A stretch of DNA of 55,866 bases, taken from NCBI GenBank assembly GCA_002269645.1, contig NIVC01004191.1, positions 1 through 55,866 on the forward strand. The letters are read 5' to 3'. This document shows, piece by piece, positions 1 through 51,700 of this stretch. A program made the translations under genes and the position numbers. Numbering within the stretch: the first letter of the stretch is position 1; the number at the start of each line of letters is the position of its first letter. This DNA comes from Macrostomum lignano. Lineage: Eukaryota. A model generated the notes under the pieces. The model worked only from the letters and a program-made list of their open reading frames with translations, was not told where the DNA came from and searched no databases.

Positions 1-75
1 TTTCTGATAGTTAATCATTGCCAACATTTTCTAGTTTACTTATGCGCTTGGTGCTCACGAGCAGCAGCAGCAGCA

Positions 76-914: not shown

Positions 915-918
915 CAGC

Positions 919-4910: not shown

Positions 4911-5917
4911 AGCAGCAGCCGCTATCCGTGCCCTCGGAGCATCCCATTTCTTCCCACAAAGGAGGGGTAACAATGTTGAGGTTGGAGCAAGAGAATAAAA
5001 TTATGGATCTAAGCATAAGAATGACTCTGAACTGAATACAATTTTTACATCGTCTTGGCTTTTTACTCGTATTGGCAAATGTGTACGAATATTCCGCAAA
5101 AAACATTGCCAGAAACACATGTAAAAAGATATACATGTAAAAATCTAAATGCAGTAGAAATGATTTCTTATGGCTTGAAAAAACCTTCTTTCCGGAAAAA
5201 TTTCCATTAAATTTCATTTATTGTCTGTACAGTGGTCTGTCTTGTATAGCGTACACAGATCAGCAGTACGGCGCTCTGGACTGGACAGTGAAAGTTCGTT
5301 AAGTGGGTTAGGAAAAATTTTGCGTCTTTCTATACTGTACATTCATGCTGGATGACAAGCGGAGGGTGTAGCGCCACGTACCACTTTGGAGAACGGATTT
5401 CGTCTCCCCCATCTCCCCTTCTTGGCTGCTCCACTGCAAATGCAACTGTCTTAAACAGTCCTTAGAATAATAATTTGGTAAAGTGCAGATTTCAGTAAGG
5501 CAAAACAGAACTTTCTGCTGCAAACATTCATACCAACCGGCCATTAAAGAGCATTTTGAAAGTGGATTCGTCTCATTTTGGCTGCTGACAGTACTTTCAA
5601 CTTGTATATAATGCTTGCACGAATAAATGCGCATTCTGGGCATACAAGGTACTAAAATATTGTATATAGCATTTTGAACAGTTAAAGCTGTACGTTGAAG
5701 TGAAATGAAAATTGGGTAAGAGAAATAAACGTCTACTATTACGTACATTCATACCTTCTACAATCACAGCTGAACATAATGGGAGCGCACAAGTCTCATT
5801 TTAAGCAGTAGACAGTACTTGAAGCTGGCATATAATGCATATATGCTTGCTCTTAAAGGCACATAAATGCTATAAATGTTTCACGAGCCAACAAGGAACT
5901 AAAACTTCCAACTATCC

Positions 5918-17888: not shown

Positions 17889-19191
17889 GGAGGGCTGAGC
17901 AATAAGTTTCCAGATGTGTTTCCAGAGAGGCAGCTGACAAAATCTGACACCATAGGTGTCAAGTACATTATATAAGTACAATGTTTGTAAAGTTTTAGAC
18001 ATACTGGTCATATATAGCCAGTGCAGCACCCAAACCAAGCTAGCATACCCACCCTATCTATCAAATTCACAATGGAGCTCAATAGGAGTCATTTTAGAGC
18101 AATTATTTATTACCATTTTAAAAGTGGTTTGCAGCAGCAAAAAAGTCTTGAGCAATTGCAAGGAGCTTTTGGGGATGAAGCACCATCTAGATCCACCATT
18201 TTTACTGGTTTGCTAAATTTTGATGCGGCAGGCAGAGTCTAGATAATGAGGAGTGCAGCAGCTAGCCTGTCTCCACAACAACTGAGGATAATGTTGCTAC
18301 TGTCTGGGCCATGGTTGAGGATGATGCCCAAGTGACTGTGGCCTAGATAGAGGCAGAGGTGGGCATTTCATCAGGATCCACCAGGACAATCCTGCATTCA
18401 CAGCTCAACCTGAGCAAGATTTCTGCATGCTGCATGCCTCATTAGCTGACTCCGAAGCAAAAGGAGGCTCGGGTGACCTAGTGCCACACTATGCTTGACA
18501 GATTCAACGGAGGCAGCTCAAACTTGGTCTGGGATATTGTCAGTGGTGACAAGTCCTGGATCTATAGTTTTGACCTGGAGACTAAGTAGCAGTTGGCCCA
18601 GTGGACTCCAGTTAGTGGCACCCTACTATCCAAGCTTTGGTGAGAGCACAGCGTGGCAAAGCAGATGGTGGCCATTTTTGTAGCAAAAACTGGTCATCTA
18701 GCCATGGTTACACTCATGCAGCAGTGCACAGTCACCAGTGATCAGTACACCAACATTTGCTTGCCAGAAGTGCTGAGCATTCTCTCTAGGCGTTGCCCAA
18801 AGACTCAAGCTTGGGGAATCCTTCTCTATCACAATGCCCCAGCCCACAAGGCTCGACAGGTGGCAGAGTTCCTGGCTGGAGAGTGCATTTAAGAGCTTGG
18901 TCATCCACCCTACAGCCCCAACCTGGCCCCGTGCGACTTTTTGTGTTTCCACAAATCAAGCGCAGGATGCGTGGAATCCACTATGGATCACCAGAAGCTG
19001 CAGTGGAGGCCTTCATCTAGCATGTGGAGGAGGTGCCTGCTTCAGATTGGTTCAGCTACTTTAGCAAGTGGTTTGAGCACATGAAAATTTGCATTGAATC
19101 TGCTGGAGAGTACTTTGAAAAGATGTAACTGCTTTTTTCTTTCTAACTATTTCTGTCTGCGCACATCCAGAAACTTATTGCTCAGCAGTCA
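17889..19191 (+). mobile_element. Full-length (~1.3 kb) degenerate mariner transposon
   Basis: TIR core GCTGAGCAATAAGTTTC at both ends with TA flanks. Transposase remnants MELNRSHFRAIIYYHFKSG, CMPH*LT (WVPH-like), IVSGDKSWIYSFD, HNAPAH and PPYSPNLAPCDF. Confidence 0.9.
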
Positions 19192-25708: not shown

Positions 25709-27326
25709 CCGGTGTTTTTGGCCCGCTCGGACCCCAGACGCTTGCTATCGGCCAGGAACTCGCTCTTCCCTGGCCTGACCGTCGTCTCTTGATCCTCGGA
25801 TTGCGACTTCCCCCCATCATCATCATCAAGGACGAGTCCCCCCGGTCATCGGCAGCGACCATCAAAGTGAAGAGCATCACCTGCTATCTATCAGCGAAGA
25901 TTGTGACATCAGCATCATCCCGAGTCTACAGCTGCGAAGCATCAAGCCGATTCGGTCACTGCAGGTGGATTACCTGGTCTCCGGCTGTTGAGTTTCTGAT
26001 TGGTTGGGTGAGAGGCTACCTAGATTTGCTTGATCGGGTGATTCCCGCGCTATCTGTCCCCTGTTTCAGCAGCTGAATTAGGCGCACACTTTTGCTCTTT
26101 TTGTTCAGTAGTGCTGTTACTGAGGCAGAAGTCATTCAATAATACTGCTAGTAGTCTAAAACTCTAATTCAATCTGAAGTGCAAAGTAATCTTACTGATC
26201 TAAGGAGAAGGTTAAATCTAACAGTTATTTTTATCGGTTTTATTTCTTTGTTCGCCGATGGCTCAGATGAGTAGCTAAGCTAGTAGGCGCCGGTCGCAGT
26301 GGACCAATGGCAAGGCAGTTCTCAGTCGATCAAACTATCAAATCAGTGAGCAAAACTGCCAGAAGTGCAGAATCGGCGCCAGAGATGTACTCTGTGCACT
26401 CTAGGTTAGCTAAGCAGCTCGGGTGATGAATCATGCGGTCTCTGAAGTTCGAGTTAGCCTATCATCAGCGCTAGGAGAGGCTGGTTGGCGTGTTGAAGGC
26501 CAAAAGTACATATCTTCGTATTTAGCTATGTAAATAGTACATGTAGCTACCCCATAGTCTCGCCACTGCAAGAATCCCCTGCACAAGTCCCCTCTGTACC
26601 TGCATGGCCAATGCGATCAAGTCCCAGCAGTGTCCCTTATCATCGGCTATGACTTCGAGATTGACAGCAAAAAGACACTAGTTGGCAGGTAAGTGCAAAG
26701 CCCCTTCTAGTCGGAAGCCCGATTTCGAGAGTCCCGGTGTGGTGAGCCAGGGCGCATGGACTGGTGGCAGCAAATTAGTTGATCTGCGGATTAGCTAATT
26801 TCTACCTTCAAAATTCTCCTTGCTTGTCTCTCGCTGTCTTCTCTTAGCTATAGGACCTAGACTGCTCGCCCCAAGATCAAGCTACCATGGGGCTGACCAT
26901 CTGACAGGAGTGGGGGGCCAGGACTATAATTGATTTATTTCTGAGACCTGAGGCCCGAAGGCTTCCCCACAAGGGGGCCGAAAGGTCGAAACCCATCATT
27001 AAAATATACATAGTGAGAGTGAGGTGGCTGTATACTAGATGACAAAATTATAGGGTGGCTGACCAAGGGGTGAGCTAAGGCCAAATAGGGGTGAAATGTA
27101 GCCATTCCACCGTATGCATTTAGCGTTTAGTACAAAACCTCATCTATGCACTTTCATCTGCTGATTCGCTAAACGCAGGCTACCAATAGCAGCCTAACAT
27201 TGCGCTGTATTTTAATGCACGAAAGTACGAAGCAGTCCTTAGACCCCTCGCACTTCCCGCACTCTAGCAATCTCGCAGACCCTTTATCCTTTTCCTCTAC
27301 TTCCGACTCACTGTCAGAGTTCGCAG

Positions 27327-30300
27327 GCAAAGTCTACCCAGCTACTTACTACAATTCAGCTGAATGATGACCAGCAGAATATAACTCAACAATTTGAGTT
27401 TCTATCCGACGTTGATATTATTAGCGCATTTCCCGATCTAATTGATCGGCTTCATTCCCAGGGTCGCTTACCAGCTTTGGTGTTTATGAACGATCGTAAA
27501 GGCATTGAAAAGCTTGCTGCGTCGCTTGTTGATCGAGCTAATGAAAGGATTAAGCAAGCTGTCGATCCGAAACTGCTAGAGCGCATGGAGAAAGCTCGCG
27601 AAGCGATGGCCATCGCCCACAAGCGCAATCGTGACAAAGATGATTCGGACGATGAAAATCCGGTCGATGCCGCCGAACGGGAATCCTACTACAGACATCG
27701 GCTAGAACTGCGCAGCAAAATTCAGGCCTGCGCCTATTTTAAACCGCAGGCCGTACAAGAATCTTTTCTTAAGGAAGTACTGAAGCCGTTAAATGAGAAT
27801 GTGACGAATATGATAGAATTTGGCGTCTGCTATCACCATGCCGGTTGTTCTGCAAAGCACCGACAAGCTGTTGAGATGCTGTTCCGCAGCGGTCATTTGC
27901 AGGTTAGTTTAGGCTGTTTGCTTATTTTTTCAGCTTGATTGATCCATGGCTCTGAGTGCGAGCTAGGACTGTACATGTATGTAAGTTTAGCTTTATAGTG
28001 TTAACATATAGAGGTAGCTTAACTAAAAAATCTAGACGTAAATCAAATCAAAAATAATTCGGGAGCCTAGAATTAAAATAATAATTTTTGCTTCGATCTG
28101 CACATTTAGCCTTTTGACTTGATTACTCAATCGATGCGGTGTAAAAAAACTAAGCTGTTTTTACTTGGCCGTGTTGACAAAATATCATTCCACTTGAATT
28201 TTTAGTTTTAATTAGTAGACATAAAACGCATAAAAACTTACGAAGCGTTGGATCGACCAAAAAAGAAGCATGACAATCTCTGACTCTCGATCAAGTGTGC
28301 CCGGCAATGCACTCCTAACCCTCCCAGCCGCGTGCCGGCGTCAACACCCCCATTCTGTCTGCGTCAAACCCCCCTCCCAGTTGCACCCACCCCACTGTCT
28401 GTATAAGCCAACAGATTTTAGCTGGCTGCGCCCCAGTGCGCCCCCTCGCTCGCCCTGCGATTGGCTGGCGGCCCAGCCAATCGGTTTGTGTACTCTCCCC
28501 TTCCAATCGCGACCCCGGCGGGCTTTGTAACTTTTAAGACTCGTAATTTTGGCTAGCTGGGCCTGGGGTAGCGATACGATACCCCAGGGCTTAACCAGCT
28601 AGCGTAAATATAAATGTATGCAGGAGCGGCGGTAGGGGAGGCCATCCTTTCGTGTCGATCTAGACGCAGCTACAAGCTCTATTACAACCAAAACCGAACT
28701 TACTCAGAAGCCAGTCTTTACTCAGAACTTTCGCCAGAAGTTGAGAGAAGCCACCCCTACCGCCGCCATCGCTGTTGCGTGTGAAGATAAAGAGAGTGAC
28801 TCGCGTGTCTTTCTCATTCGAAGGACTGGTTTGGTTTAATTTGTGCCGTAGGGACAAGCTGATCAAGTCTCCTGGCGCGATCCCACGCTCAGAGTCCGAA
28901 GTCAGTCCGGCCAGTTGACTGACGCCATCTCTGGGCTCGTCCGTTGAGATAACTAGAGTTGCGATCTGGCCTATATCACAACACTCGTGCCGTGCCGTGA
29001 CTCTGAGCTGGCTGCAGCACCAGCTCAGAGAACTGTCCAGTGTGGTCGTTGTTTCGAGATCACCCACACGACCCAGCAATGCAGAAACTCTATAGTTTGC
29101 AATTACTGCAACCGGCCCGGTCACAAACAGGCCAGGTGTTTCAAACTGCAAAGAGACCAGCAGCAGACGGGAAACGGTCAGGTGACCTGGAGGCAGGGCC
29201 ATCCAGGCACCCACCCGAATTAGCAATAGAGGCCCAACCCAGCGCACGGAGCCAACCCGCACAAGGTACAGAACTTGGTTTTGTCGATGTGATATTTGAA
29301 AGCAGAACAAGTAGTATGGCATGCTTGCTAGATTCCGGCTCAAGTATATCCCTGCTAAGTGAAGCCGCGTGGAAGAGGAACTCGAATCGAGCCGGGTTGA
29401 AGCCAAGCTACATAAGAAAGAGTATTAAAGTTGCAAATGGCGATGTCAAAGATGTGCTGGGGGAGTGCGTTGGGGAATTTTCCATTGGCTCGCATAGATT
29501 TCGTCAACACCTTCGTCGTCGTCTCACACATACTGCACCGTTGCATCCTTAATGCAGATTTTTTCCGATCCCAATCAGCCACGTTAGATTTTGCCAACTA
29601 TCAGATCGTCACTTCGGAAGGAACTTTTTCTTTTTGTATTTCTTCTGAGTGACCCCTTCTTTGCCGGATAGTCATTTCGAAATCGGAAACAGTTCCTGCA
29701 AATCGGTCTCAAATCATTCGAGCTAAGCTAAGTCGGAGAGGAGTGAAGGAATTTCGGTTTTTAGGAATAGCAGAGACCGCTCCCAGACTGAAGGCCATGT
29801 GATGCTGCCTAGGTCAGTTGTGCCCTCTGCTGACGGTTCCGTCCCTCTCAAGATCACCAAAGTGTCGGTAGAACCTGTAGTCCTGACAAAAGGAAAGCAG
29901 ATTAGCTGGTTCTCGCCCATCCATGACAGCCAACCAAATCTTGATGAAGAACCCAAGGCACAAGTTAACCAGGTCTCTCTCGACAGACTGGGATCCTGTA
30001 GAGCATCTGGGCAGTTGTGACTCGCCGGACTTGTCCGAGGACCAGCAGGTGTCGTTCATAAAGTTGAACCGTCAGAACAGAGATGTCTTTGCCAAGGACC
30101 ATAGCGAGCTGGGTTCAACTGACCAGGCAATGCATACCATAGACACCAGGGACGCCAGGCCAACTAGAGAACCACCACGCCGCATCCCGCCGCACATTAG
30201 GCCAAAAATCGATAAAGAAATCGACAGGCTAATAGATTGCGGTAGGATCTACGAGTGTCAATCCTCGTGGGTCAGCCCAGTCATGCATGTACGGAAGAAG

Positions 30301-33300
30301 GACGGATCCATCTGGCTGTGCCTGGATTATCGCCGGCTAAATGAAGTAACCAGTCTTGACCCTTTCCACCGCCGCGAATGGATGAAACTTTAGAGGCGCT
30401 TGCAGGAAATGCTATTTTTTCAACTCTAGACTTGGAGAGAGTGTCTTGAACACTTGAGCAATTGTAATATTTGACAGAGGAGTAAAAATGAAGTACAAAA
30501 CTGGGTACACAAGTTTGAGTGAAAGGCTTTTACATATCAAAACAGTCCAGTCCGGTTATTGAGCGAGCTAAAAAAGTTAAAGTTGACGGCTAGCACCCCC
30601 CATGGCAAGCTGATTGTTCAGAGTAGGTTTTTGGGCCTTAATGTGTATAGCCTCTAATAAGCTAAGTTTGTTATCGTTCTTACAAAATTCTATAGTCAAT
30701 CATTTCGTATGGTTCAGTGTCACAGCAGCTCTTGCAGGTGAGCAAATGTTCATTAATGGCAGAGTTTTTTAGCCAATGTTCTCTAACCCTCGTGTACATG
30801 TGTCGTTTGGTCTTTCCTTTATAGGAAATGCTCTGGTCATCAGAGCAATTAAATTTGTAAACAAAACCTGCAGCGAGAGGTCGGGGCACACTGGATTTCT
30901 GATTCGATCTAAACTTAGCGATCTTTTCGGTGCGAAAGACAACAGGAATTTCAGCTTTGAGGTTTTTACGGAATAACTTTTTGATATTTTTAAAACTCAA
31001 TAGAGCAGAACGCTGAAAGTTTCTTTACCCGATTCGGTCGGCCAATCAAAAATAATATTGGGTGTCATCTTTTATTTCGTGCAGCCAGTGATTCACTTAA
31101 GAGTCTCACCGCCCCGTCCAGGTGGTCACAGCAACCGCCACCCTGGCTCTGGGCGTTCACATGCCCTGCAAAACTGTCGTATTCGCTAGCGACGACAAGT
31201 TTTTGGATGCGCTCAACTATCACCAGATGGCCGGTCGGTCTGGTCGACGCGGCTTCGACAACATCGGTAACATTGTGTTCTACGGCGTGCCCGCCTCCAA
31301 GATTGCTCACCTGATCCAAGCCGACCTGCCAGAACTGAAGGGCGGCTTTCCGCTTACCTGCGCTTTCGTTCTCAGACTGTTGCTACTGACTGGGAATGCC
31401 ACAGATCCCGAGGTGGCCCACAATCAAGCGGCTACGGTTTTGGAGCATCCGTTTGCTGCGCATCAGAGGCCGGATATGATGCAGCAATTACGATTGTTCT
31501 TTCTGTTTAGTGCAGAGTTTCTGTACGGGCAGGATCTTATTAATGAGTTGGGCGCTCCGCTGGTGAGTTTCATAGTGTTAATACTGTTGCACCAATGCAG
31601 GAACCTGTTTTTTTCCAAGCTGTATGCCATTTTATTTAAGTTCAGAATTTTCGTATTAAAATTTTTTTTTGATATCGGTATTTTAAGCAATTGCAATTTT
31701 CTGGGATCTCAAGACTTTTGCAACTTCTGCGTATCGGAGGAGAGACTCAGCGATGTAAAGCTGAGCTTTAAGGGTAAGGGTAAAGTCGTAAAGATATTGG
31801 GTGTTTGATTTGATTTTGAAAATTTTCACTGATTCTGAATTTCATTGTGGCATCCAGAGTTTGAATCCAGTATGCTAAATGGCACTGCGATTCTGACGCT
31901 TAAAATAACCATGTTTGCGTTGCTGACCCTGTCAGCTTTATCCTGCTGCACATTGCCTAACCCGATGAAAAATGCTACCTGCTTCGAGAAGAGTCCCAGA
32001 GTGTTGCAAGCAACACATGTGAAAAAGGAAATAAGTGACTCTAGACGACTTTGAAACGACGAGATGTCACGGTACAAGTCGCCAAAAAGTCGTCAAAGAG
32101 TCGCCTACGATTCAATTTGAAGCATTTAATTTTGAGACTATAAAACGACTCTACGGCGATGCAAGGGACTGTAGCGCTTCTATAATCACTATGGGGCTGC
32201 AGAGTATCTGAAGTCATTACAGTCTTGAGTCGTTAAAAAGTCACAAGAGTCGCCAGTGAGTTGTTTGCAATGAAGTAGAATGGTGTTTCTTCCCGGTTTA
32301 GGCACTTAAGATTACCTTAAGACTCGAGCCTCTTCAGTGGGAAGTTCTCTTAGCTCTCAGTAGCGTAGGTAGTGCTGCCACCAGTTCCTTCAGGTCTCGG
32401 CCTTCGGTGAGGTAAGCTTCCCGTCGGAACGAAATAACGAAGTCAACGAACACAGCACCAAGTGCAGATTTGCAGTTCAACGTACGAGGCGTCTCGTCAG
32501 CGGTACCTGCCGGGCTTGGTTGGTAGAGGGAGGGCTGAGTTAGCCTCTCGTAGGCTTAGGGCGCTTTAGTCGGGACTCAGTCAGACCAATAAGAACAGAA
32601 CTTAACGCACACAGATGGGCTGACACTCAGAACTCGCGGTTTCGGGAAAACGACTAGAAACTCAGAAAACTGGAAGCTCCTTGACGGAAACAAGGGGGAG
32701 GGGGGTCCTATTTATAGCCGGGAAACACCCGCGCACAAGACCTCGTGACTTGTTCTATTTTTAGAACTGACGTCACTTGAGAGTCTCGGGCAGGGTACTA
32801 GCGCGCGGAAGGCCTCGTGACTTGTTCTATTTTTAGAACTGACGTCACTTGAGGTCTCCGGCCAGAGTACACGCGGCTGTGACTCAGTTGCTATTTTAGC
32901 AACGAGTCACTCCTCTCCTTAGAGAAGGGAGGGGTCCGAAAGCACGTGATTCTCCCGGTAAACAGGGCCAACAGTAAACATGTTTACTGCACTTTAGGAC
33001 TCGAAGAACGCAGAGTCTGTCATGTGACTTGCTCACATGACAGAGGAAAACGGGACGGGAACGAAACAGAGACAGCCCACAGCCCACAGCAGAGAAGCTG
33101 AGGGCTGAGAACAGAGACGCAGAAGGGCAGAACAGGCCAAGGGCAGCAACAGACGGGCCAAGGGGGGCGGGAAGCTGACCAGCGGCAGACAGCAACCCAG
33201 GGCGAGGGCGAGGGAGACTGCTGACAAAGTGGGACGCCTAACATCAACTAGCGGATCACTACAGCAATGACTCTAGCAATTCTTGTCACGGTAAATTTAT

Positions 33301-35347
33301 CAACGGTATACGAATACTATTCGGCCATTCTCCAGGACCTGGCCGGCCTAGTGTGCCACATGGGCTACCTGCAGCCTGGCAACTTTGTGCTTACCTATCT
33401 GCTACGAACTCCCGCTCTGCGCCAGCTGTGCGAGCCAGCCAGCAATCAGCTGCCGCCGATTCACTACGAATTCTATTGCGTCGGCTGTCAGACTGATGAA
33501 CCGATAGTTGGTCAGAGATTCAAGTGCACCAAGTGCTGGTCTGACTACAGCCTGTGCGCCAGCTGCTACTCTGGCCGCCCTAATCACAGCCGGGGCTGGG
33601 AGCAGCAGCACACGGCCGCAGATTTTGAGCTTCAATTGCCGCCTTTGCGAGTGCAATTCACCTACAAAACGTTGAGGAAATTGGTTCGAATCCTGTGCCT
33701 CCTGTTCACTAAAATGGAGTTGCCCCGGTCTCTGGTTAAAAAGACGGCTGATGGAATTCTGCATTATGCCAGGTAAAAAGCTCTTCGATTTTTTGCTAGA
33801 ATTTCACCTACTCTCGCACCGCGCCACGACTCCTGGCTCGATTCCGTGCGCAAACACAGATTTTAGGGCTTGTGCACAAAAATTAGCCTTGGGGCTGTCC
33901 TACGTGTCTTAACCCGGGTCGGTTCGGGTGTCCAGCCCAAGTACAATACGATGGTACCTGCAGGCGTTGTGACGCTCTGCCAATATGGTATTACTGTACC
34001 AGGTTGCTCGTAAGTATGGTATATAGGGTTCGCTCTCCCGGCGTTATGACGTAGAATTTACTGTAATCTATCAAGCTTCCCAGGAAAGACTGAGTTCAAT
34101 CAGGCGGCTTACCGGTAGCCAAGTTATGAGATGCACGTTTGCCCTTTTTGGATCGTTGTCGATTTATTTGACGCGTTGAACCACTTGAAACTTTGTTCAG
34201 GTCGCAGTAGGAGCGAGAAAACCCCGAGAAAAAAAAGGGGGCGAGTCAGAAAAACCTGGGCCCAAATAAATAAATACCACCACAGGCCTACGTTTAGGGG
34301 AGGGGGGGCAGACGGCCTCACCGGCTAAGCCCACAAAGATTAGAGCAAAAAACAAACGCGCAACTGGTCAGCCAATCAAAACCCCGCCTAGGGAGGAGGG
34401 GCCGCACCCGCGCCAAAGACGGCCCAGCCGCAAGCCAACCAGCCCTGAGCACGGGGCAGGGGGGGGGGCACGGCTGGGGCCGCCAGCCAGACCCTGCCAC
34501 GCCCGCCAACCCCCCCCCCCTAGCCAGCCCCAAAGTGCATCGCGCCCTGCAAACCGGCAAGGGCGCATGCACTACATACGATTCACAGCCACAGCCATGA
34601 GGACCAGTCCCTCAAGGCACAGAATGTACATGCCTGACTATTAGAAAGCCAGGGCCGCTGTACACCTTGTATGAGTGCGAGCCTGCTTACAGTACCATCT
34701 CTCCTTTACTGATTTCTAGGCCAACCGAGAACTCCAAGGTGCTTCTGAAGCCGCTGCCAACCGATATTGAATCAGCAGTCCGTGACTACAACTCGGCCAC
34801 AGCTGTGACTTACACCAACTACCTGCGCTGCATTGCCGATTCTGGCCTGTTGAAATTCTCTACCGCTCTGCCGTTCAGCCAATCCGCTCCCATTGTGCCT
34901 AGCAGCGATCGCCAGCTCCAAGTGTCAGCGGTGGCTCCTCTGGCTCGGCTATCCTGGGGTCCCACCACTCCTGATTCTAACGAAGCACTTCGTCGCGTGC
35001 TATTGAACAGCGGTAATAACAGCTCGGAACAGTTGCGTCGCCTGTTGCCATTGGAGATTGTCACCGATGCCAATTTGATTCCGCTGCTGCCTACGAAGCG
35101 ACTGTTAAACGCCTACGCTTTGGACTTTTTCACTCACTGCAGTCGGGCTTCGATTGTTCGCGATAATGGAATTCGGGAGGGCGACTTGTTCGACTTGCTC
35201 AAAGACTTCTCACTGGCCTGCAGGGCCGTGGCGAATTTGCTGACTCAGCTGGCCGCTGATCCCGACGATCCGGTGGTCTGCGCCTTCAAACAGGTGGCAT
35301 TCGAGTACAAAGCGCGCTTTCGTCGAGCCTTCCCTGGCGCGCGTTGA
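27327..35347 (+). CDS. DDX60: DDX60-like Ski2-family RNA helicase, C-terminal half (exons ~27327-27902, 31122-31562, 33336-33772, 34720-35347) with an inserted ZZ zinc finger
   Basis: RLPALVF; GVCYHHAG...VEMLFRSGHLQ|VVTATATLALGVHMPCKTVVF...LDALNYHQMAGRSGRRGFD; LAGLVCH; SKVLL; LNAYALDFFTH...DN...EGD...LLKDFSL. All match the DDX60 motif order, and splice phases are compatible (0,0,2). The start of the first exon is approximate. Confidence 0.9.
28660..30435 (+). mobile_element. Ty3/Gypsy fragment (gag double zinc knuckle, protease, 5' RT) in the DDX60 intron; frameshifted and truncated
   Basis: CGRCFEITHTTQQC and CNYCNRPGHKQARC; CLLDSGSSISL; PPRRIP...WVSPVMHVRKKDGSIWLCLDYRRLN...IFSTLDL. Confidence 0.9.
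30435..31000 (-). mobile_element. Penelope-like element 3' remnant (GIY-YIG endonuclease)
   Basis: FVYKFNC...SYKGKTKRHMYTRVREH...SAINEHLLTC, then LLEAIHIKAQKPTLNNQ, the typical PLE C-terminus. Confidence 0.85.
32271..33243 (-). mobile_element. Probable solo LTR (~970 bp) in the DDX60 intron
   Basis: Minus strand starts TGTTA and ends CA; TATAAAT at ~32708-32714; internal ~40-bp duplication containing TGACGTCA; flanks GCAA/TCAA (imperfect TSD). Confidence 0.45.
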
Positions 35348-39411: not shown

Positions 39412-41522
39412 TTAGCCCATCGAGCAGTAGTCCTGCAGCTGCTGGAACTCCAGTCCGGTGAGGCTACGACTGCTCATACCGTAGCAGCGGATTGTGCCCT
39501 TGAAACTCCTATCATCTTCCAGGCTATAGCCTAGTCGCAGACACCCGAAGCGACTCGCAGCAGCGCTCCCAATGCTTCCATTTTGCGTTGGCTCCGCGTA
39601 CGTGATGCTTCCGTTAAAATAAAATTTCACACTTTCGGCGTTGGCGGCGAACGAATAGCCAACTGAGATTAAACTGGTTGAGTCATCGTTAGTAAACAGG
39701 TTGTAAGCTGACCAACGTTGATACTGGAAATATCCGTTCATCCAATGAAAATAGGCGTACAATGAACGGCTATATTTTGCCCAAGTACTAGCCGATTGGG
39801 TTCCGTCGCATTGTTGAATCCGGTGGTAGAAATTGTAGCTGAAAGTTTAGTCACTCGTCAGATTTTTTCTATGAACAATTGTTACACCATAACCCCTCCT
39901 CACTCTCTGCCCTAAGTCCCCTATCTTATCCCTCCCTGCCCCAGCCCCCATGTCACTCTGCCCCAGTCCCCCAACTCACCTCTTGCCCTAGTCCCCTTCC
40001 TCCCTCCCTGCCCCAGTACCCACCCTACTTCTTGTCCTAGTCCCCAACCTCACTTCTTGCTCCAGTCCCCCTCCTCACTCCCTGCCCAGCCCCCACCTCA
40101 CTCTCTACACCAGCCCCACCTCACTCCCTCCCCCAGCCCCCAACCTCACTCCCTACCACATTCCCCCTCCTCACTCCCTGTCCCAGTCCCCTACCTCCCT
40201 GCCCCAGTCCCCTACATGTACCTCCCTCCCTGCCCCAGTACCCCACTCTACTTCATGTCCTAGTCCCCCTCCTCACTCCCCTGCCCCAGTCCCCCTCCTC
40301 ACTCCCCTGCCCCAGTCCCCCTCCTCACTCCCTGCCCAGCCCCCTCCTCACTCCCTGCCCCAGTCCCCCTCCTCACTCCCTGCCCAGCCCCCTCCTCACT
40401 CCCTGCCCCAGTCCCCCTCCCCACTCCCTGCCCAGCCCCCTCCTCACTCTCTGCACCAGCCCCCCACCTCACTCCCTGCCTCAGTCCTCCAGATCCTTAT
40501 TCTCTTCTCCACTTATCTATACACTTTATCTGTATCCTAATTGATCTCTAGCCAATTAAAAGATTGTCAAGAAAGTGTTGAAATATTGTCTCACCCGCTC
40601 GTCATGTTATGCCTAGCTAGCATGTAGAATGAATAATTTCTATTAAAGTCCAAATCGTGCTCAAGGCCAGGCGTCTTAGCAATCAGATAGGAATCATTGT
40701 GCCCCATCAGCTGGGCACCGTCGGTCCCAAGGTTCACGTTGCGAGCGGTGAGGCAATACTGCCTTGGATTCACCTCGTTCAGTAAGCCGCTGTGCGTGAA
40801 TCGGTAAAACATTTTCATCTGCAGCTGGCTCAGTAGACCAGCGTTTTCTGAAAAATAGGCAAGGTACGTTACGACAATGACTCTATCCTTAACGTGGGAG
40901 AAGTGTAGAGTCAGAGTATCGTCTGGGTTTCTTTCGCTGACCAAGAAGCGACACTGCCCTGCCCACATCAAATCTTGTATAACTTTAGTCTTCTCCATGT
41001 TTAAATTGACACACAAACAACGGATAAACGAGTTTCTGAGCATCTTTTCACACAAGTTGGCTTGCTGAAACAACCTTGTCTTGAATTTTTGTGTGAATCA
41101 AGAATATTGATTGGACCAAACTGCAAGAATCAGTGTCGCTTTTTCGCAGAGAAAATAGTGTTCCTTGGCAGATTCATTCGTGCTAGCCACTTACTAGAAG
41201 CACCCGTATGCTGATAAGTGTCGCAGCTTCCAGATGTCCATTGTTCCTCTGTCGAGCAGGAGTCGCCAGTGTAGCACAGCCGAGTGTCCGGATCAAAGTG
41301 GAAGGCGTCACAAAGCGGCTGCAGGCTGCAGTGCACCGAGCACTCAGCGTTGCTTCCAACGTTGGACGCCGCAATCACTGCAGCGTCGGTGGGGCAGAGC
41401 GAAGTGCGTTGGAATGTCAGACTGTCCGTTTGGAAGCCGAGAGCAGAAGACAGCTGGCAGCAGCATGTCATTAGCATGGCAATCGGTAGACATAGCTTTG
41501 TAATTCGCGGGTAGCGATGCAT
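39412..41522 (-). CDS. Secreted PAN/Apple + LamG/concanavalin-like domain protein, 406 aa (exons 41522-41195, 41060-40595, 39838-39412)
   Basis: Hydrophobic signal-like N-terminus; SNAECSVHCSLQPLCDAFHFDPDTRLC (PAN); GHNDSYLI...LDF and LRLGYSLEDDRSFKGTIRC...LTGLEFQQL (LamG-like). GT-AG junctions give an open 1221 nt. Confidence 0.8.
39890..40490. repeat. C-rich intronic minisatellite (CCCCAGTCCCCCTCCTCACTCCCTG-like units)
   Basis: Tandem degenerate copies directly visible. Confidence 0.9.
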
Positions 41523-43357
41523 TTTCTAACAAGGGTTGAAACAGACTATTGACGCGATGGACTGAGAGTCCGCCTTAGCCCCATCATATTTTATTGGCAC
41601 TGAGCTTCCCCTTACATGTGGTATGGGAGGGGGAATGTAGCGACAATTCTATTGGCTGTTCGTCATGTTGGCATGGTTACGGAATCGGCCTAACAAACTC
41701 ACACTTGATTTCACTGTATTTCCCGTGTTTGCTCTCAGCTAATACTACTTCTGATGTTGTTTTCTAACAGGAAATCGAATTTTCTCGGGAAGTATCTGCT
41801 TCTACTGACATGACAGGCTCAAATATCTACATGTGAATTTCGCCTTTGTTGACTCTACAAAGAATTTACCGTTGGATTTCTCCTTCCAGCGTCCTCTCCG
41901 CGGCGGCCACTTCAGCGCAGAAAGTTGATGAAAAAGTGGTCTCTTCAATAGCCATTCAGCGATGCCAATTCATGAGTTAGGAAGACTTATCAGTAATGCA
42001 GGAACTACCCTCCGCTTTCCCCGGGACTTGTGAATTATTGACAGAAACAGAATCGCCGGTTTCCTCTATACAATGAATTTCTCCTTCAATTAAGTCGAGT
42101 TGGCTTCCCATAAGCTTTATCTCTGTCTCGGCCGCGCATTTTGAATTGCAACACTTTTCAGGCTTTAGAATGAGTCATCAATGTAAAATTTATGGGCGGC
42201 GTGCGTCCTGAAAAAACTAAGTTTTACGCAAATTCTACTTATAAATCTGTAAAATAAAATAATAGATTAGTTGAGCTGCATTCAGTATGGCATAGAAAGT
42301 TTAAGCAAAGAATTCTAAGCTACAACAGTCCAACTTGCAGCTGCAATTCTTATGCTTAAAATGTTTAGCATTACATTGCTCACTAGGAGACAGATTGAGA
42401 GAGGCTGCTTAAGCGTTAATGGTGCCAAAGCTGTACCCGGCAAGCGAAAGAGTTAGGAGAGAAAAATAGTAGAAGCAAGCTAGAATAGCCCGCCTGTTGG
42501 TTGAGTCGAAGAGTGGCAGAAGAGCAGTTTGAGCAGTGAGCTTGTATGTGCTTTTCTCTTTCGCTTCTCTCTGCCCATCAATGACAGACAGAGAAGCTCT
42601 CAGCGTCAATCTTCTCGTTTTCATTTTTTTCATCGCCCAGATGCTGTAATGAAGATATAAAACGAAGAAAACGCTTGCCTCAGCCGGAGCTGTGACGTAT
42701 TTTTTGGTGGACACGAGCCAGTTATAGCCACTGCACGCAACATGCAGCAGGTTCAACAGTCAGCCATGATGGTTTCTCACGTAAGTACAAGTATGATTTT
42801 ATCGCTCTAATCTTATATTTTTACCGGTAGATATGCCCTAATGTTTTGTTAGTTTAGGTAACCATGCAACCAATAGAGCAATTCCATTGGACCCTTAACC
42901 ACCAACCTGTGTATATACTATCTATAGTAAATCGTAAATCCTGTGCCACCAAAACATAGTAAAACAAGTAATGTAGTCTGTCTTTACAATTAGCAACTGT
43001 GTAAAGATAATTGTTAACGATAACAAGATTGTAATTATTTTGTACGCAAATAAATTTCGTCTTATGATCTGGATATCTTCGGAGCAGAATTTATTAAAAC
43101 GCAATGATAAACTTAAGTTTCTGCTATATACGCTGGTACGACCTAGAAAATGACCAAACTGAACCCAAGGACCACTAGAAGTTTTGAAGTTCGACTGAAC
43201 CTTTGAACGCTATGTACACAAATGAGTTCAGCGATTTGGATGGACATATGTACTATAAATCTTTAGAATCTGTGTAAAAACATACGCTCGCAATAACTGA
43301 GAGAAGCACCATGACACACTTAAACGGACACTACGACTCAAAAACACTCTTGAAACC

Positions 43358-44203
43358 ATGATAAAAAGCATTAAAGACAACGGCCCTAAAGTAAGGTAAT
43401 GTTTGCTTCTCTCTAACCCTGCTCAATAGAACTCGCAGCAGGAGCAGCCTCAACTGGCCCAGTGGCAAGCGGATCGAATCTGCACAGCTGCAGCTTCCGG
43501 TAGCCCCATCGCCTTGACGGCCGCCCTAACTGCCGTTGGCGTCACAGTCGACGTAGCCACTTCGGTAGACCGGTCCGTCGTCGACGCCGCTTACGCTGCA
43601 AACATCGTCAACTGTCGCGACTCAGTGCGCTGCTTGACGCCGCTTCACTGTGCGGCCACCGCAGCCGCTGCCGCCGCTGCCGGACCTGAAAGCGATCAGG
43701 TGGACGCAGGCGCGGGAGACTGCGCCGCTTTGCTCCTCGTGTTGGGCGCAAATCCCAATGCCAGAGACGGCCACGGTTGCACACCGTTGCACTACGCGGC
43801 TCGCTACGCCTCGCCAAAGGTTTGCCAATGCCTGCTGACGTGCCGGTCAACAAGGATCGATTTGCGCAACGCATGGGGCAGGACAGCACTCATGTTCGCC
43901 GCTTGGGGCGGCGATGAGAGTGGAGCGGTTAGCGGAGCTGGTGGCAGCGAGATTAAGCGGCTGGTGATTGCTCGATCTCTGCTCAGGGCCGGAGCCAACG
44001 TCGACATCCGCGACTCTCGCGGCAGAACGGCGCTGATGTGGTCGGCGTTGAACGCCAAAGTCGCTCTGCTCCGGCTGCTGCTGAACTCTGGCGCCGATTG
44101 GCGTCGGAGAAATTTTGACGGGCTGACGGCGGCTCAGCTGGCTCAGCGTGAGGGTCACGTCGAGGTGGCGCAACTTCTAGCTGCAGTTGCAGACAATGCG
44201 TAA
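43358..44203 (+). CDS. Ankyrin-repeat protein (~268 aa; exons 43358-43390 and 43430-44203)
   Basis: LTPLHCAA, GCTPLHYAA, GRTALMFAA, GRTALMWSA, GLTAAQLA; 39-nt GT-AG intron containing CTAAC branch point. The first exon is tentative. Confidence 0.85.
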
Positions 44204-45702: not shown

Positions 45703-48700
45703 TTATACTTTACTGTCGCTAAGTAGCTTCATTGCGTCTCGCAGAGGCGGCGGTGGCGGCGGCGGCGGCGGCGGCGGCGGTGGCCGCGGTGGCCAGATCC
45801 TGTTAGGGTTTGGTGGCACACGCTCGTACAGAGAGGATGAGGATAAAGTTGCATTTGAGGCCAGGTCGTCAAAGTCCTCAGGTGGAGAAGCGTTCTGCCA
45901 GTAGGCGGGCGGTCGCGGAAGAGACGCAGGCTCGACGCTATCTATTTCTTCGGGACGACGTCGCCGTAGGGGTGGCCGTTCTCGCAAGAAGACGCGGACG
46001 CTGATGCAGCTGCTTCCGTTGCTGCCACCTCGTCGACTGGAAAGAACGCAGAAAGCAGCGGCCAGTGCTGCAGCAATAACCACCCCAGCCACCAGCAGTG
46101 CGGGCAAAAGCCAGGGCTGCTCCTCAAGCAGCGATGTCGCAGATGAGAGAGTGATCATCTGCACCGAGGCCGGAGAGCTGGACTCGAACTCACGGCTAGC
46201 TGGATTGAGGTAAAGCAATGGACTGCTGACTCGACCGATAGTGGTGGCAGCCTCTATCTTCACCGTATAAAATTTTGGTCCTGGAGGTGTTTCTTTGAAA
46301 GCGAATTCCGTCTCAGACAGGCCTCCTATTGACCTGCCGTCCAATGTTAGCCTGTAGGACAGGAGGGGACTGTTTAATCGAAAGCTGCCGGACCAGTCAA
46401 GGCGAACCAGAGGGCCAGAGAACTCAGCCAGTGGAGGCTGCACATAGACGGGATCTGCATGGAGGAGTATGAAAAAACGAAAATTAAAATTTCGCATGTA
46501 ATAATTTCGACTTTAATAAACGAATTTGATGGTACCTGCTGGTGAGGTATGCACTCGAAGCCAGACAATTTCATCGCTGCGAAACCTGGAATTGCTGACT
46601 ACGAGACGCGCTTTTAATTCTTGATAAGGGTCCAAACCGGTGACGTTCCAAGCTCCGGAAGCCTGTATTATTGGATAGTTTCTCTTTATCGTCTCTGTTC
46701 CAAAGACCTCAACTAGAAGCTCGTAGCCATCAACGGGACCGTTCGGATTTGCAGGCGGTACAGGCCTAAGAGTGATGTAGTTCGCGCTAGTGGCCTCGAC
46801 AGCTGGAGGACGCAGGCCCCGAGGAACACCAAATAGCGTAGAAAATTCTACTGCAGGACCGCGACCGCAGCCCGCTGAATTGCAAGCCTCCACCCTCGTC
46901 GAGTATACCGCGTTTGGTGTCAGATTACGCAGGCTGACAACCAGCAAGTTGTTGTCAAGCTGTATTTGGTATCCATTAAGGATGATGCTGAGATTTTTTA
47001 TGTGGCCGTTTGGCTTATTTGCTACTGGCGATTGAACCTGTAAAGTCGCGGAAACGTTGGTGACTCCCTGCAATAAAAGCAAAACAAGTGACTGAGTAAA
47101 GCACAGTTATTGATAAGTTGATTGCTAATAGAATGCTGCACTGTAAATGCTGATTTTTGCAGAAAAAACATATGATATTAATGATACAAGACGCATTCTG
47201 AGTTAGAAACTGTTAGAAATGTTTGTTGCAAGAACTATGTATAAAACGTACCAACAGCAGAGGAGCAAAGACCTCCGATGGTGCCATCTCAACTGTTCGC
47301 ACTAACGCCCAGTCACTTAAGCTCCCCTCCGGCAATGAGTTGAAGCAGCCGACTCGATAGCGGTAGAACGCGTACGGAAAAAGTTCATTTGATTCGTCAA
47401 TAAACTTCCAGCTCCCATCGCTATCATAATCTGCCCCGCTGAAGATGACAACTGCGTCAGAGAAACTGCTGTCTGAATGCAGTTGCGCTTGCCTTTCCAA
47501 GCGGCAGCTTACGATACGACCATTCGGCTGGCTTGGCGACAACCAAGTGACCCGAATTCCAACCTGCGTACCGTTTGTTGAGTTGAGTCTAACAGGCTGC
47601 AGTGATGGCAGTGGTTGACCAGTTGGTGGTGCCTCTAACGTGCGAAACGAAATGGTCTCTGTTGTCGCGCAAGCAGTGTCTGTGCAAGCTGTTAGCCGAG
47701 CTGAGTAATTCGTGAACGGATGAAGGGCCAACAAAGCGAAGGAAAGATACGTTGGTGGCAAAGGAATGTTGCCAAAAGGAGTTACTGCAAGGCTATAGTT
47801 GCGTAATTCGCCATTGCTGCGCAACGGAGGCACCCAGGCTATAACTGCAGCAGTAGCGTTTAGCTCAGCAATACGAGGCGCTTGAAGTCCTTCGGGTGAG
47901 CCAGCCTTAGTGACGGCGATGGCATCGGCGCTGCGAACACCGCCGGCGGAGTTGACTGCTACAACTGCGTAGGAATAGGCTGTGTCAGGCAACAAGCCAG
48001 CGTCAACTACCTGAAGTGTCGTTGAGGAAACCTCCGTAAACTTTTGACTGTTGCGCAACAGTCTGTATGATGTCACAACTCCGTTTGGTCGTTTTGGTGG
48101 TTGCCATTCAATCGCTATACGACTGGAGTCAAGAGTAGTCGGAATTGGTGCTTCCAGATCGGCAGGTGCTGCTTCTGAAGTGCGCACAGTTGTGACTGGA
48201 CTGTCAGTGCAGCCTGATGAAGTGCAGGCAGCCAAGCGAAATGCGTACTGCGCGAACGGCATTAAGCCGACTACTGCTGTGGTGTTTGTGTCAGCCGGTA
48301 AGTTTGTAAACAGAGGAACTTCGTTTTGTTTTAGCATGTATCTGCAATTGAAAATAGTTAGGATGAGCAAAATTACAGTATAAAATTTTGTACTTTCTGC
48401 AAAAACTTTATAGCTGAAACATTACCTAGTAATAACACCATTTTGAATCGCAGGCGGCAACCAGGATAAGTGCACGGCATTAGCTGTCACAGAGAAAATC
48501 TGGGGCGCTTTCACTCCTATTGGTGGTGCCTCTGGAGTGCGACCGATGCCAGGCGGTGATGCAGGGCCACAAGGAGGTGCTGGGTCGGCGGCAGAGTTGC
48601 AAGCCACTACTGAGTAGGCGTACAATGTGAAAGGTCTAAGATCTGAGCCTTTATCTGTCCACGATATTGTAGAACTATTTTGGTTTATGCCTTTGATACT

Positions 48701-51700
48701 TGAGACAATTGAGCCGTTTCTCCAAATGTTGTATTTTATAATTCGACCATTAGACTGGACGGGTGGATTCCAAGAAATAACCAAATACATTGGAAGCAAT
48801 GGTGCAACGCCTGGCACATCTGGAGGACCTGGCGTCGTCTCTGGAGTGACCAACTCTACAAAGGCACTCCTAATGCAGGCCACAGAGTTGCAAGCCTCAA
48901 TGGCATAGGAGTATTTGGTCCAAGCTTTTGCACTCGAGTCAGTTGCGGAGAAAATTGACCGGCCATTATCAGCCTTTGACAAATTTAAACTTCCGACAGT
49001 ATCGAACATTTCGCTAGTTTCTGAGCGTTGGCGGCGCAGGATGCGGTAGATTAGAATTTTTCCATTTGGCTCAGCCGGTGCAGACCAATTCACGCGGACA
49101 GTAATCGAGTATCTGGTGGCCTGGTTAACATTCATTAAAGACCCATAAGTAGCTAAGGTGTCGGCAGATTTGCTGTGCATTGTTGAATTTTTGGTAGCTG
49201 GATGTTCAATAGTACCACTGACGTTAGCAGGAACAATAATGGCTGCGACTTGCGGTGGCGACTGAGCCTCGGGCCGTGCCTCAGCGGTGCGGAGGCTTTC
49301 TGTGGGGCCAGTGACGCAACCAGCTTGTGTGCACGCTTCCAGAGCTACATTGTACACTGTGTACGGCTCTAATGGACGCCATCGAAAACCTGTCGAACGA
49401 CCAGCGTATAATAATACACTACTGTTAACAGTCAGCATATGCTTCAGCCGATACAATTTCACAAAACCATTTGGACGACGAGGAGAAAGCCAGTTAAGTA
49501 AAAGCTCGCGACCGTCAGCATTTGGCGTTGCTGTTATTTCAGCGAGGCCAATGGGCGGCGCCTCCCAGGTCGTTGCTTCGGTCCAGGGGCCAGAACCGAC
49601 CCCGCGGCTGTTAAAGGCAGCGAGACGAATATTATAGGTTGTAGCCGGCGATAAGCCACCGATAATGCAACCTCCACGGCTACCATCTAGCTCAATATGC
49701 TTTCCTGTGCCTTCAACTGCGATTCCCGCGCTGCGAATTGCCTAAAATGAGTAAAGCTGCAACATAAGTGCTTCTAATACCAGAATATCAGAGCTTCGTA
49801 ATTCCGGATATGTACATGTAAACACTTTAATGTCTAGCCTTCCGCAAATTACCTTGTAATCCAGTCGGTACAAAAGTACCCGCCCACTCCGTTCAGCACT
49901 GTTCGTCCAAGATACATTCAGGCTAAATGGATCCAGAGCTTCTGCGATAGGCGTCGGGACGTGCTGCGGAATATCATCAGCCGTTACTACTTCTGTCCAG
50001 TTACTTGCCGTCCTGCCGTAGTTGTTAACAGCCACGAGACGGTACTCAAAAGCGGAGTTGGGAGTAAGGTCAGGACTGAAGTCGAGAAAATTTCGACGCC
50101 CGCCGTCAACTTGACCAGCGAGTTTGATGGTAGACTCGGCAGCAACTGCAGCAGGATTTTCGTAGAGCTTGCGACGCTCAATTTTAAAGGTGCGAATGTT
50201 TTGCTGGCTTCGGGTAAGCTGTGCTGTTTGCCACTGCACTTGCACTGCATAAGCATCCACTGCGAACACGAGTGGGCCTGGCATTTGAAACGGTGCTCCA
50301 TCAACGGTGCGAGTAAGTACCCAGTCGCCCGCTCGACAACTGTAGTCGCTGATATTCTGGCAGACAATCATTGCAACGCTGTATTGACAGTTTGGCCGTA
50401 AGCCGTCGTAACTTGAGACCGTGCCAAAAGTCTCTCGAAGCAAATAGCGCTTTTGTATTATATCGCCAAATTCACCAATCAGTGTTAAAATGTACTGATC
50501 AATGCCAAGCTCCAGTGGCAGCAAATTCCAAGAGATTTGCAGACTGCCATCGTTCAGAGGCTCACACGCCTGAATGTTGCTTGCAATAGGTGGCTGGCGA
50601 GCAGGTGTTTGAACCATGATGGACGGACCGACAAGTTTCGTTGAGTTTTTCACTCCGTGAGCAATTACTCTAAACCAGTAGCGCTTATTGATCTGCAGAT
50701 CCGTAAAACTCGCGTTCCTCTGCCAAGCGGGAAGGTCACTAGCCACTAACCGGAATTGGTCGTCGCCGTCGACTTTCTGCTCAATCGAATACCGGATGGG
50801 CCGACCGCCTCTAATAGGCTCTGACCAGTAAACCAATACCGAGCTGCTCCCTGTGAGGACCACTCCCGGAGCTTTCAAACCAGCAGGTGGTGATTCGAGT
50901 GTTCTAACAGTGGCTAGCCAGCTGGTACGTTGGTGCAGCCTTGTCTTGTGCAAGCTGAAACTAGGAATGCGTATAACGTGTCTTGCTGTAATCCGCCGTA
51001 TCGATAGATGGTTTCCAGACCTGAATAGATCTGACGCTTGTTTGTGACGTCGTGTAACTGGTATTCCGTAATGCGTCCATTTGGATGCTCCGGCGGTTGC
51101 CATTGAGCCAAAAGCGCATCAACTGCTAGGGCCGTTAATCTGGGAGGCTCAATGCTTGTTGGAACCGATTCCGCAGTTGCTGCTTCAATCTAGAATATTA
51201 TTTTAGATTGTTTAACTGTAGTGGCTTTTTGACATGACGTGTGAAAACCCTTGCCGGTGTAATTTATTATTTATGTAACAATCGATTCTACACTACGATA
51301 TGCAAGCAATTAGTGATATAATGTTAAATATGAGAGGTTTTCAACACAGCGCTGATAAAAGCGACAGTCGATACGCAGCCACCGACAATGCTATTACTCT
51401 TAGATATAGCAGTTATGGTCACTGCTTTGTTCTCGCATCACCTAGGCCCACTATCTTACATGAGTGCCATGGTCTTACTTACAATTTTGTTCATTATCAG
51501 GAAAGTACATGTATAAAACGTCGGGTTGACAGCTGGTGTTCAAAGACGCAGATAACCTGACGAACCACAAACTAATTTGTTTGCGCAGATCCAAACGTTA
51601 ATTCGACTCCATTTTGCAACCATTCATAAAACCATCATTTTCTTGCGAGTAGCAATGCTTATAGACTACAAATGAATGTACGCTTCGTTACCATTTAGTA

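Follow-up and report, generated by a model that had tools for sequence, protein, structure and literature searches.

A ZZ-type zinc finger within the C-terminal extension of a DDX60-like helicase from the flatworm Macrostomum lignano

Introduction

Contig NIVC01004191.1 of the free-living flatworm Macrostomum lignano (assembly GCA_002269645.1) was analysed along positions 1 to 55,866 of its forward strand; this whole stretch, referred to below as the window, is eukaryotic in character, with spliced genes, retroelement remnants and zero N bases. The subject of this report is a DDX60-like gene, four exons of which (A to D) were located in the window, together with a ZZ-type zinc finger that exon C encodes within the C-terminal extension of the predicted helicase (Table 1).

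How DDX60, an interferon-induced helicase, works is still under dispute, and its C-terminal extension is required for activity yet has no assigned function (PMC9724679, PMC4833184). In the human protein, this extension is needed both for antiviral activity and for activity against internal ribosome entry sites, and protein contacts have been proposed for it (PMC9724679). A ZZ-bearing DDX60 is a new architectural variant of this known family, undescribed in the literature searched, where neither a meaningful link between DDX60 and ZZ domains nor a link between Macrostomum and DDX60 was found.

The DDX60-like gene

Exon borders were placed by tblastn with DDX60 relatives, after which the junctions were inspected, yielding a stop-free DDX60-like reading frame of 696 codons in four exons, with AG/GT borders throughout and phases that agree. 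Exon A lies between an acceptor AG at 27316-27317 and a donor GT at 27903-27904, and exon B, in phase 0 and likewise bordered by AG and GT, matches Pfam Helicase_C with 40.9 bits. Exon C is a single open frame with AG/GT borders that begins in phase 0 and stops two bases into a codon, and this split codon is completed by the first base of exon D, which follows an acceptor AG at 34718-34719. The plus-strand open frame that spans 33468-33630, within exon C, reads LRQLCEPASNQLPPIHYEFYCVGCQTDEPIVGQRFKCTKCWSDYSLCASCYSGRPNHSRGWEQQHTAADFELQLPPLRVQFTYKTLRKLVRILCLLF, and the in-frame translation of 33468-33630 itself is EFYCVGCQTDEPIVGQRFKCTKCWSDYSLCASCYSGRPNHSRGWEQQHTAADFE.

Table 1. Positions of the DDX60-like exons and of the elements of the inserted finger in the window.
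Feature	Position	Strand	Description
Exon A	27318..27902	+	Linker and first half of RecA2; the gene's earliest exon inside the window
Exon B	31122..31562	+	RecA2 motifs V and VI (TATLALGVHMPCKTVVF, QMAGRSGRRG) and start of the C-terminal extension
Exon C	33336..33772	+	DDX60 flanks DLAGLVCHMGY...LRQLCEP and TLRKLVRILCLLF, with the ZZ finger in between
Inserted segment	33438..33668	+	77 residues, against the 7-residue loop of other DDX60 proteins
ZZ-type zinc finger domain	33459..33632	+	About 58 residues (IHYEFYC...QQHTAADFEL); Pfam, PDB match, fold
Three CxxC pairs	33477..33566	+	Cys codons at 33477, 33486, 33525, 33534, 33555 and 33564
Two candidate His ligands of the second zinc	33585..33611	+	Codons 33585-33587 and 33609-33611; spacing H-x7-H
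Exon D	34720..35347	+	C-terminal end of the DDX60 fold (NAYALDFF...FEYKARFRRAF) and stop codon

The closest relative of the spliced product is UniRef100_A0A1I8FWF1 (hereafter P0077), a Macrostomum lignano protein that is 97% identical to it and that UniProt holds as an unreviewed prediction named 'Helicase ATP-binding domain-containing protein'. Exon A is 99% identical to residues 959-1154 of P0077, and the corresponding values are 99% for exon B, 90% for exon C and 97% for exon D. More distant relatives follow the same course: by tblastn, exon B is 61% identical to an environmental protein (P0001) and 54% identical to coral DDX60, and exon D aligns with the same two proteins at 38% and 33% identity, respectively, reaching their C-termini.

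Several lines of evidence place the product in the DDX60 family. It is colinear with DDX60 proteins up to their last residues, at 33-43% identity, and when it is aligned by tblastn and phmmer with DDX60 from coral, amphioxus, vertebrates and fungi, the match extends through NAYALDFF...F.YK.RF. The RecA2 motifs TATLALGVHMP and QMAGRSGRRG are present, with motifs V and VI intact, and annotated DDX60 proteins are the top matches in large protein searches. An AlphaFold2 model of the 696-residue product, built from a 61-sequence alignment, reached a mean predicted local distance difference test score (pLDDT) of 86 and a predicted template modelling (TM) score of 0.80; when the whole model was searched with Foldseek, the matches were Ski2-like helicases, namely Mtr4 and Ski2 (expectation value, E, ~1e-10), kDDX60 (3e-8), FRH, the helicase of Pol theta, Hel308 and Brr2. 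Similar to vertebrate DDX60 and DDX60L and to annotated invertebrate DDX60, the product has the RecA2 motifs, a colinear C-terminal extension and a Ski2-like fold. Likewise, P0077 carries the family-specific PIN-like_DDX60 domain found in DDX60 and DDX60L, in addition to DEAD, Helicase_C and ZZ domains. The differences from DDX60 and DDX60L are the 77-residue ZZ insert in place of the 7-residue loop and, for the copy in the window, the lack of the N-terminal half. In the explanation that we favour below, and that we consider probable as a whole, the part of the gene in the window is the 3' half of a helicase gene of the DDX60 family (Ski2-like).

The intron between exons A and B holds a retroelement remnant (28600-30400, plus strand) that combines a gag-like zinc knuckle (CNYCNRPGHKQARC) with the beginning of an open reading frame (ORF) resembling a polymerase. 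An aspartyl protease is also discernible in it, with a Pfam Asp_protease_2 score of 22.2 bits that lies just below the cut-off.

The inserted segment is a ZZ-type finger

By profile, ligand pattern and predicted fold, the segment at 33459-33632 is a genuine ZZ-type zinc finger. The Pfam ZZ family (PF00569), whose curated gathering cut-off is 21.4 bits, matches exon C with 27.3 bits (E = 3e-6) and the spliced protein with 24.2 bits. When exon C was compared by phmmer with all PDB sequences, almost only ZZ domains were returned, including those of PRT1 (1.4e-5), HERC2 (3.5e-5), p62 (4.4e-5) and MIB1. The three CxxC pairs stand in cross-brace order (CVGC, CTKC, CASC) and are followed by two His residues.

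The predicted structure agrees with this assignment. In the full AlphaFold2 model the finger occupies residues 384-442, between helices 368-373 and 452-466, with pLDDT values of 85-89 and a strand (E) and helix (H) order of E-E-E-E-H-E; its last loop (model residues 421-430), with a pLDDT of 70, is the part of lowest confidence. A Foldseek search with the model of the exon placed ZZ domains in 17 of the 20 top positions, among them HERC2, PRT1, dystrophin, p62, BIG and ZZZ3, with probabilities of up to 1.00 and weak E-values (at least 0.03), the domain being small. Target-normalised TM-scores were 0.54-0.74 for entries that consist of an isolated ZZ domain and 0.11-0.16 for the long chains of dystrophin complexes.

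A chance pattern of Cys and His residues was considered and is ruled out by the Pfam, PDB and fold results and by the conservation of the pattern in relatives. Similarly rejected was an artefact of reading through an intron, since the finger and its flanks share one exon and the finger of the relatives lies in uninterrupted ORFs. Because the finger and both conserved flanks are together in exon C, the finger is not skippable as a cassette.

A rare insert at one site of the DDX60 fold

A HMMER search of 1.84 billion representative proteins (E <= 1e-30) returned 388 relatives, with P0077 as the best, and the fetched DDX60-like proteins were aligned with MAFFT from motif VI to the C-terminus, about 146 of them having both flanks of the insertion site. 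Between the LC.P and TLRxLV anchors of this alignment, the loop has a modal length of 7 residues and a range of 0-30 in about 140 of these relatives, against 77 in the window protein. In turtle and Rhineura DDX60, for instance, the two flanks run as ...FHKLCQP, 7-10 residues and VMEQLVLVLANLF, with no insert between them. Loops of 72-77 residues occur in five of the aligned sequences only, namely the window copy, P0077, P0078, P0223 and P0001, and a regular-expression scan of 226 proteins found the ZZ pattern confined to the insert-bearing sequences. Three lineages among the aligned relatives carry the insert, at the same site and with similar lengths: 76 residues in P0077, 76 in P0078 and P0223, and 72 in P0001 and the related fragment P0227.

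These relatives differ in the state of their fingers. P0077 scores 22.6 bits against Pfam ZZ, above the cut-off. P0078, from marine metagenomes, is a full-length DDX60 of 1725 residues with PIN-like, DEAD and Helicase_C domains; none of the eight ligands is missing from its finger, and the insert taken by itself reaches 21.4 bits, exactly the cut-off. It is encoded without introns on two marine metagenome contigs of about 6 kb (L002, positions 133-5310, and L003, positions 59-5236; ENA ERZ27293408; TARA SAMEA4397500), and P0223, from a Logan assembly, is a close variant of it. Poly(A) tails, which would have marked the contigs as transcripts, were looked for on L001-L003 and none were found; the flanks hold microsatellites. 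P0001 carries a half-decayed finger that scores 19.2 bits, below the cut-off: in this protein and in P0227, CxxC pairs 1 and 3 are kept, whereas pair 2 and both His residues are gone, and the missing ligands are exactly the four of the second zinc in a cross-brace arrangement. In both P0078 and P0001, the finger stands in an uninterrupted ORF. Across four aligned insert-bearing sequences CxxC pairs 1 and 3 are invariant (4/4), pair 2 being present in P0077 and P0078 and gone in P0001, and the candidate His ligands of the window align with His residues of P0077 and P0078, where their spacing is H-x6-H.

Elsewhere the insert was not encountered. It is absent from the relatives examined in corals, amphioxus, a hemichordate, orthopteroid insects, skates, frogs, lizards, a mole and fungi; a scan of viral contigs for insert-bearing relatives gave none, and a scan of metagenome contigs gave three loci, with the insert in none. 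A word-indexed protein search with exon C alone returned no match, the relatives having no common 5-residue words with it, and the same kind of search with an alignment of four sequences yielded nothing beyond a P0001-related fragment and one insert-free relative. In these respects the sequence-only reading has stood up: it had placed a ZZ finger at 33468-33630, in frame and in one exon within the C-terminal region of DDX60, between flanks alignable to DDX60 that prove contiguous in turtle and Rhineura but for their few loop residues, and it had supposed vertebrate DDX60 to be without a ZZ domain, which is the case in the vertebrates examined and equally in the amphioxus, hemichordate, insect, coral and fungal proteins. 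The question that it had raised, whether such an insert is common among annotated DDX60 homologs, is answered by its rarity.

A neighbour-joining tree was computed after removal of the insert columns, with a required column coverage of at least 80%, which left out P0077, too short at its C-terminus. This tree groups the window copy with P0001, P0078 and P0223 in a single clade, recovered in 37 of 50 bootstraps. The zinc ligands are kept across insert-bearing sequences whose overall identity is 37-45%. As judged from these comparisons, the insert appears to be inherited rather than a local accident, and to be rare among DDX60 proteins; the simplest reading is that one old insertion took place in a DDX60 sub-lineage and has been retained since.

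A probably truncated copy compared with a full-length paralog

The window holds the equivalents of P0077 residues 959-1513 and, additionally, a further C-terminus that is missing from P0077. By tblastn, no match to P0077 residues 1-958 was found on either strand of the 55.9 kb window, and no DEAD/RecA1 domain was found in it with 11 other DDX60 relatives as queries; the PIN-like domain is also absent from both strands. The 27 kb located 5' of exon A contain repeats, a mariner remnant and another gene-like region on the same strand. Because the PIN-like and DEAD/RecA1 domains are missing, the locus alone cannot encode an active helicase/ATPase, and the sequence-only reading, which had spoken of an RNA helicase, went too far for this place. 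The locus is one of three things, i.e., a 5'-truncated duplicate, an assembly break or a gene with its 5' exons beyond the start of the window.

The differences from P0077 are distributed unevenly. Exons A, B and D show one or two differences each, whereas exon C has 14 substitutions, 13 of which lie, together with the single in-frame indel, in 33585-33770, i.e., from the last finger loop to the end of the exon. The indel (W/E versus R) falls at 33594-33602. This cluster of differences could be due to relaxed constraint, to gene conversion with a third copy or to selection.

A possible docking module and the alternatives to it

The explanation that we consider probable is that the segment is an inherited ZZ module in a surface loop of the DDX60 C-terminal extension, with a partner-docking or structural role, and that the copy in the window is truncated. 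Following this explanation, the insert would have arisen once in a DDX60 sub-lineage, in which its zinc ligands were kept. A complete ZZ finger, part of a 77-residue insert, takes up what is otherwise a short loop at the surface, flanked by two helices of the C-terminal extension, and the finger may fold on its own around two zinc ions and stand out from the tail of the helicase. There, the finger could offer a docking surface for a partner protein or peptide, by analogy with the lineage-specific inserts and terminal extensions that give other Ski2-like helicases their partners. It probably would do so without reading free N-termini, as the Asp pair that holds the alpha-amino group in other ZZ domains is replaced (see below).

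Four observations weigh against this explanation. The insert-bearing clade has moderate support, obtained with a simple distance tree. All solved ZZ domains belong to the HxH, HxxH or HxxxH type (PMC12370974), and the spacing of the last two His residues in the window is unlike every one of these; the canonical second His of PRT1 aligns with a Phe of the window finger, and the second zinc site, if formed, would be atypical and is not certain. The stretch from 33585 to the end of exon C is about 10 times more diverged from P0077 than are the other exons, which could reflect relaxed constraint. Finally, the second zinc site of P0001 is left with none of its four ligands, and therefore the finger would be dispensable in at least one lineage.

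The strongest competitor, to which we give somewhat less credence than to a docking or structural module, concerns the locus rather than the finger: the four-exon unit could be a dead, non-expressed, 5'-truncated duplicate of the full-length Macrostomum gene, with a finger that is idle here whatever its role in the parent. In line with such a duplicate, no exon for P0077 residues 1-958 is present in the 27 kb upstream or elsewhere in the window, the upstream sequence includes another gene-like region on the same strand at 5.9-8.5 kb, a retroelement is found within the intron that separates exons A and B, exon A begins without an in-frame ATG (the first ATG being out of frame), and the 14 substitutions and one indel are clustered in exon C. 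However, the 696 codons run without a stop or a frameshift, every splice site is intact and the sole indel is in frame, and the missing half could also be due to an assembly error or to 5' exons that lie outside the window. The absence of stops is weak evidence at a protein divergence of about 3%, the chance of finding none under neutrality being roughly estimated at ~0.2.

A second alternative, which seems unlikely, is that the insert is a tolerated passenger, i.e., a zinc knuckle that binds no target of its own, folds only to spare the helicase tail and is slowly decaying. P0001 and P0227 could be seen as stages of such a decay, given that both have kept the segment after losing the second CxxC pair and both His residues; the residues with which canonical ZZ domains bind their ligands are not preserved, and the last finger loop is the least confident part of the model. 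This alternative sits poorly with the window and P0078, which have the eight ligands and Y44, L73, Y78, F97 and P102 in common at an exon identity of 33%, and with the length of the insert, which is steady at 72-77 residues in all lineages, whereas shrinkage or variation in length would be expected of a neutral one.

The sequence-only reading had gone further and linked the finger to autophagy or degron recognition. According to this third alternative, the finger reads N-degrons or N-termini in the manner of p62, HERC2 and PRT1 and couples the helicase to autophagy or ubiquitin-dependent degradation. By both sequence and fold, PRT1, HERC2 and p62 are indeed the closest solved relatives of the finger. 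The degron's alpha-NH3+ group is bound in p62 by D129 together with D149, and each of D129K, D147K and D149K abolishes binding (PMC6197226); in PRT1, D312 and D336 are the two conserved ZZ Asp residues that recognise the alpha-NH3+ group (PMC12370974). In a HMMER alignment of the finger to PRT1 chain 8zg8_A (residues 303-366), the numbering of which matches the published one for Y317, I333, D336 and F352 (PMC12370974), a Val of the window (CVGC) stands opposite D312 and a Ser (YSLC) opposite D336. P0077 has the same Val and Ser, P0078 has Thr and Cys, and P0001 has Val at the first position and apparently keeps the second Asp by our own reading of a gapped stretch of the alignment. The equivalents of p62 R139 and D147, which by our own matching are residues within GQRFKC and SDY, are apparently kept in the window, and N132 is presumably replaced by Gln, a conservative change. 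A further point of likeness is a Trp that aligns with PRT1 F352, a contact for hydrophobic degrons (PMC12370974), but this Trp is not conserved even in the 97% identical P0077. Because the Asp pair that cages the alpha-amino group in p62 and PRT1 is Val and Ser here, the finger is probably not a reader of free N-termini, and it falls outside the N-recognin subclass of ZZ domains (p62 and PRT1 type) as defined by sequence. Moreover, many ZZ domains, such as those of dystrophin and MIB1, are not known as readers of N-termini. Degron reading is thus an improbable role for the finger, and the link to autophagy found no support in these comparisons.

Least probable of all is that the finger is an added RNA-contacting element that alters the RNA specificity of the helicase, loosely like the zinc-bound C-terminal domain of RIG-I-like receptors: its host belongs to an RNA helicase family, the insert of kinetoplastid DDX60 touches the anticodon stem-loop of a transfer RNA (PMC7773551) and the finger has several basic residues (RFKCTKC, GRPNHSRG), but none of the solved ZZ domains returned by the searches is described as RNA-binding, and neither P0078 nor P0001 shares the basic residues.

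Comparison with known systems

With the ZZ domains of p62/SQSTM1, PRT1 and HERC2, its best matches in sequence and fold, the window finger has the three CxxC pairs and the order of strands and helix in common. It departs from them in having Val and Ser for the Asp pair and H-x7-H for HxH, HxxH or HxxxH, and also in its setting, being embedded in a helicase whereas theirs are parts of an autophagy receptor or of E3 ligases.

Other Ski2-like helicases also carry accessory modules. The Arch/KOW insertion domains of Mtr4 and Ski2 are placed after RecA2 and are used for adaptor binding. These two proteins are the top fold matches of the whole model, and their accessory module is comparable to the flatworm insert in that respect, but differs from it in fold and size; when the DDX60 alignment was matched as a profile to a Ski2 protein, in order to place the insert with respect to the arch or DSHCT regions, the match ended at RecA2, short of the position of the insert. 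The kinetoplastid k-DDX60, to which the RecA2 part of the window protein is closest in sequence among solved structures, is a DDX60-like helicase that likewise has a lineage-specific protruding insert, an A-site insert that makes a new contact in the 43S complex (PMC7773551). That insert is located at the end of RecA2 of a two-cassette protein and is not a zinc finger, whereas the flatworm insert lies further downstream, in the C-terminal extension. Additionally, TRADD-N-DDX60 fusions of cnidarians and brachiopods are invertebrate DDX60 proteins with an added protein-interaction domain (PMC8195603); the domain is a different one and is reported as a fusion, whereas the flatworm case is an internal ZZ insert.

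A more far-reaching possibility, which we regard as speculative, is that a new DDX60 sub-family, present in a flatworm and in partly marine eukaryotes, brings a specific partner to helicase-bound RNA by means of an internal, non-canonical ZZ finger. The non-canonical traits would be the lack of the alpha-amino-binding Asp residues and the long His spacing, and candidates for the partner would include a ubiquitin-like tail, an E3 ligase and a viral protein. If true, this would describe an invertebrate antiviral helicase with a built-in adaptor and a new ligand class for ZZ domains. More modestly, the finger indicates that a surface loop of the C-terminal extension tolerates, and perhaps uses, an added docking domain, which would provide a handle for finding partners of the helicase tail. 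Macrostomum lignano is a laboratory flatworm in which RNA interference and transgenesis are available. The value of the finding is limited by the prior presence of the protein in UniProt, by the truncation of the copy in the window and by the failure of the degron reading at its key sequence test.

Other elements of the window

Upstream of the DDX60-like exons, on the plus strand at 5918-8543, long ORFs in shifting frames (5918-6478, 6316-6936, 6917-7123 and 7149-8543) encode products that resemble tetratricopeptide repeats, and no Pfam family matched them. The N-terminus of their product, MTSLQSLDQLECHFTW, resembles the human IFIT1 N-terminal SLEQLRCHFTW, and IFIT1 is the best PDB match, with an E-value of 0.024 only. 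An IFIT-like gene near a DDX60-like gene in a flatworm is therefore possible, as far as these matches go.

Several repeats and transposon remnants are found in the same part of the window. A near-perfect inverted repeat (940-2675 and 3152-4888), with arms of about 1.7 kb that are 99-100% complementary and 476 nucleotides (nt) apart, is either a foldback element or an assembly artefact. Two long tandem arrays follow at 14116-15140 and 15651-16794, with periods of 25 nt and 31 nt, respectively, the first of them being open in all three phases and showing a strong AT skew. At 18018-19081, on the plus strand, a mariner/Mos1-type transposase remnant matches Pfam HTH_48 with 29 bits and encodes peptides like the DDE region over several frames.

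Downstream of exon D, the plus-strand frames of 39916-40548 encode a proline/serine-rich low-complexity region made of 25-nt-based repeats (a direct-repeat family at 40017-40544), beside which the minus-strand ORFs of 39415-41525 had no Pfam match. An ankyrin-repeat ORF (43430-44200, plus strand; Pfam Ank_2, 84.7 bits) lies between the DDX60-like gene and a multi-exon gene on the minus strand (45706-55226). The latter consists mostly of fibronectin type III repeats, with a Pfam fn3 score of 90.6 bits in one exon, and includes a Cys-rich exon (52268-53527), a terminal transmembrane segment and a proline-rich tail.

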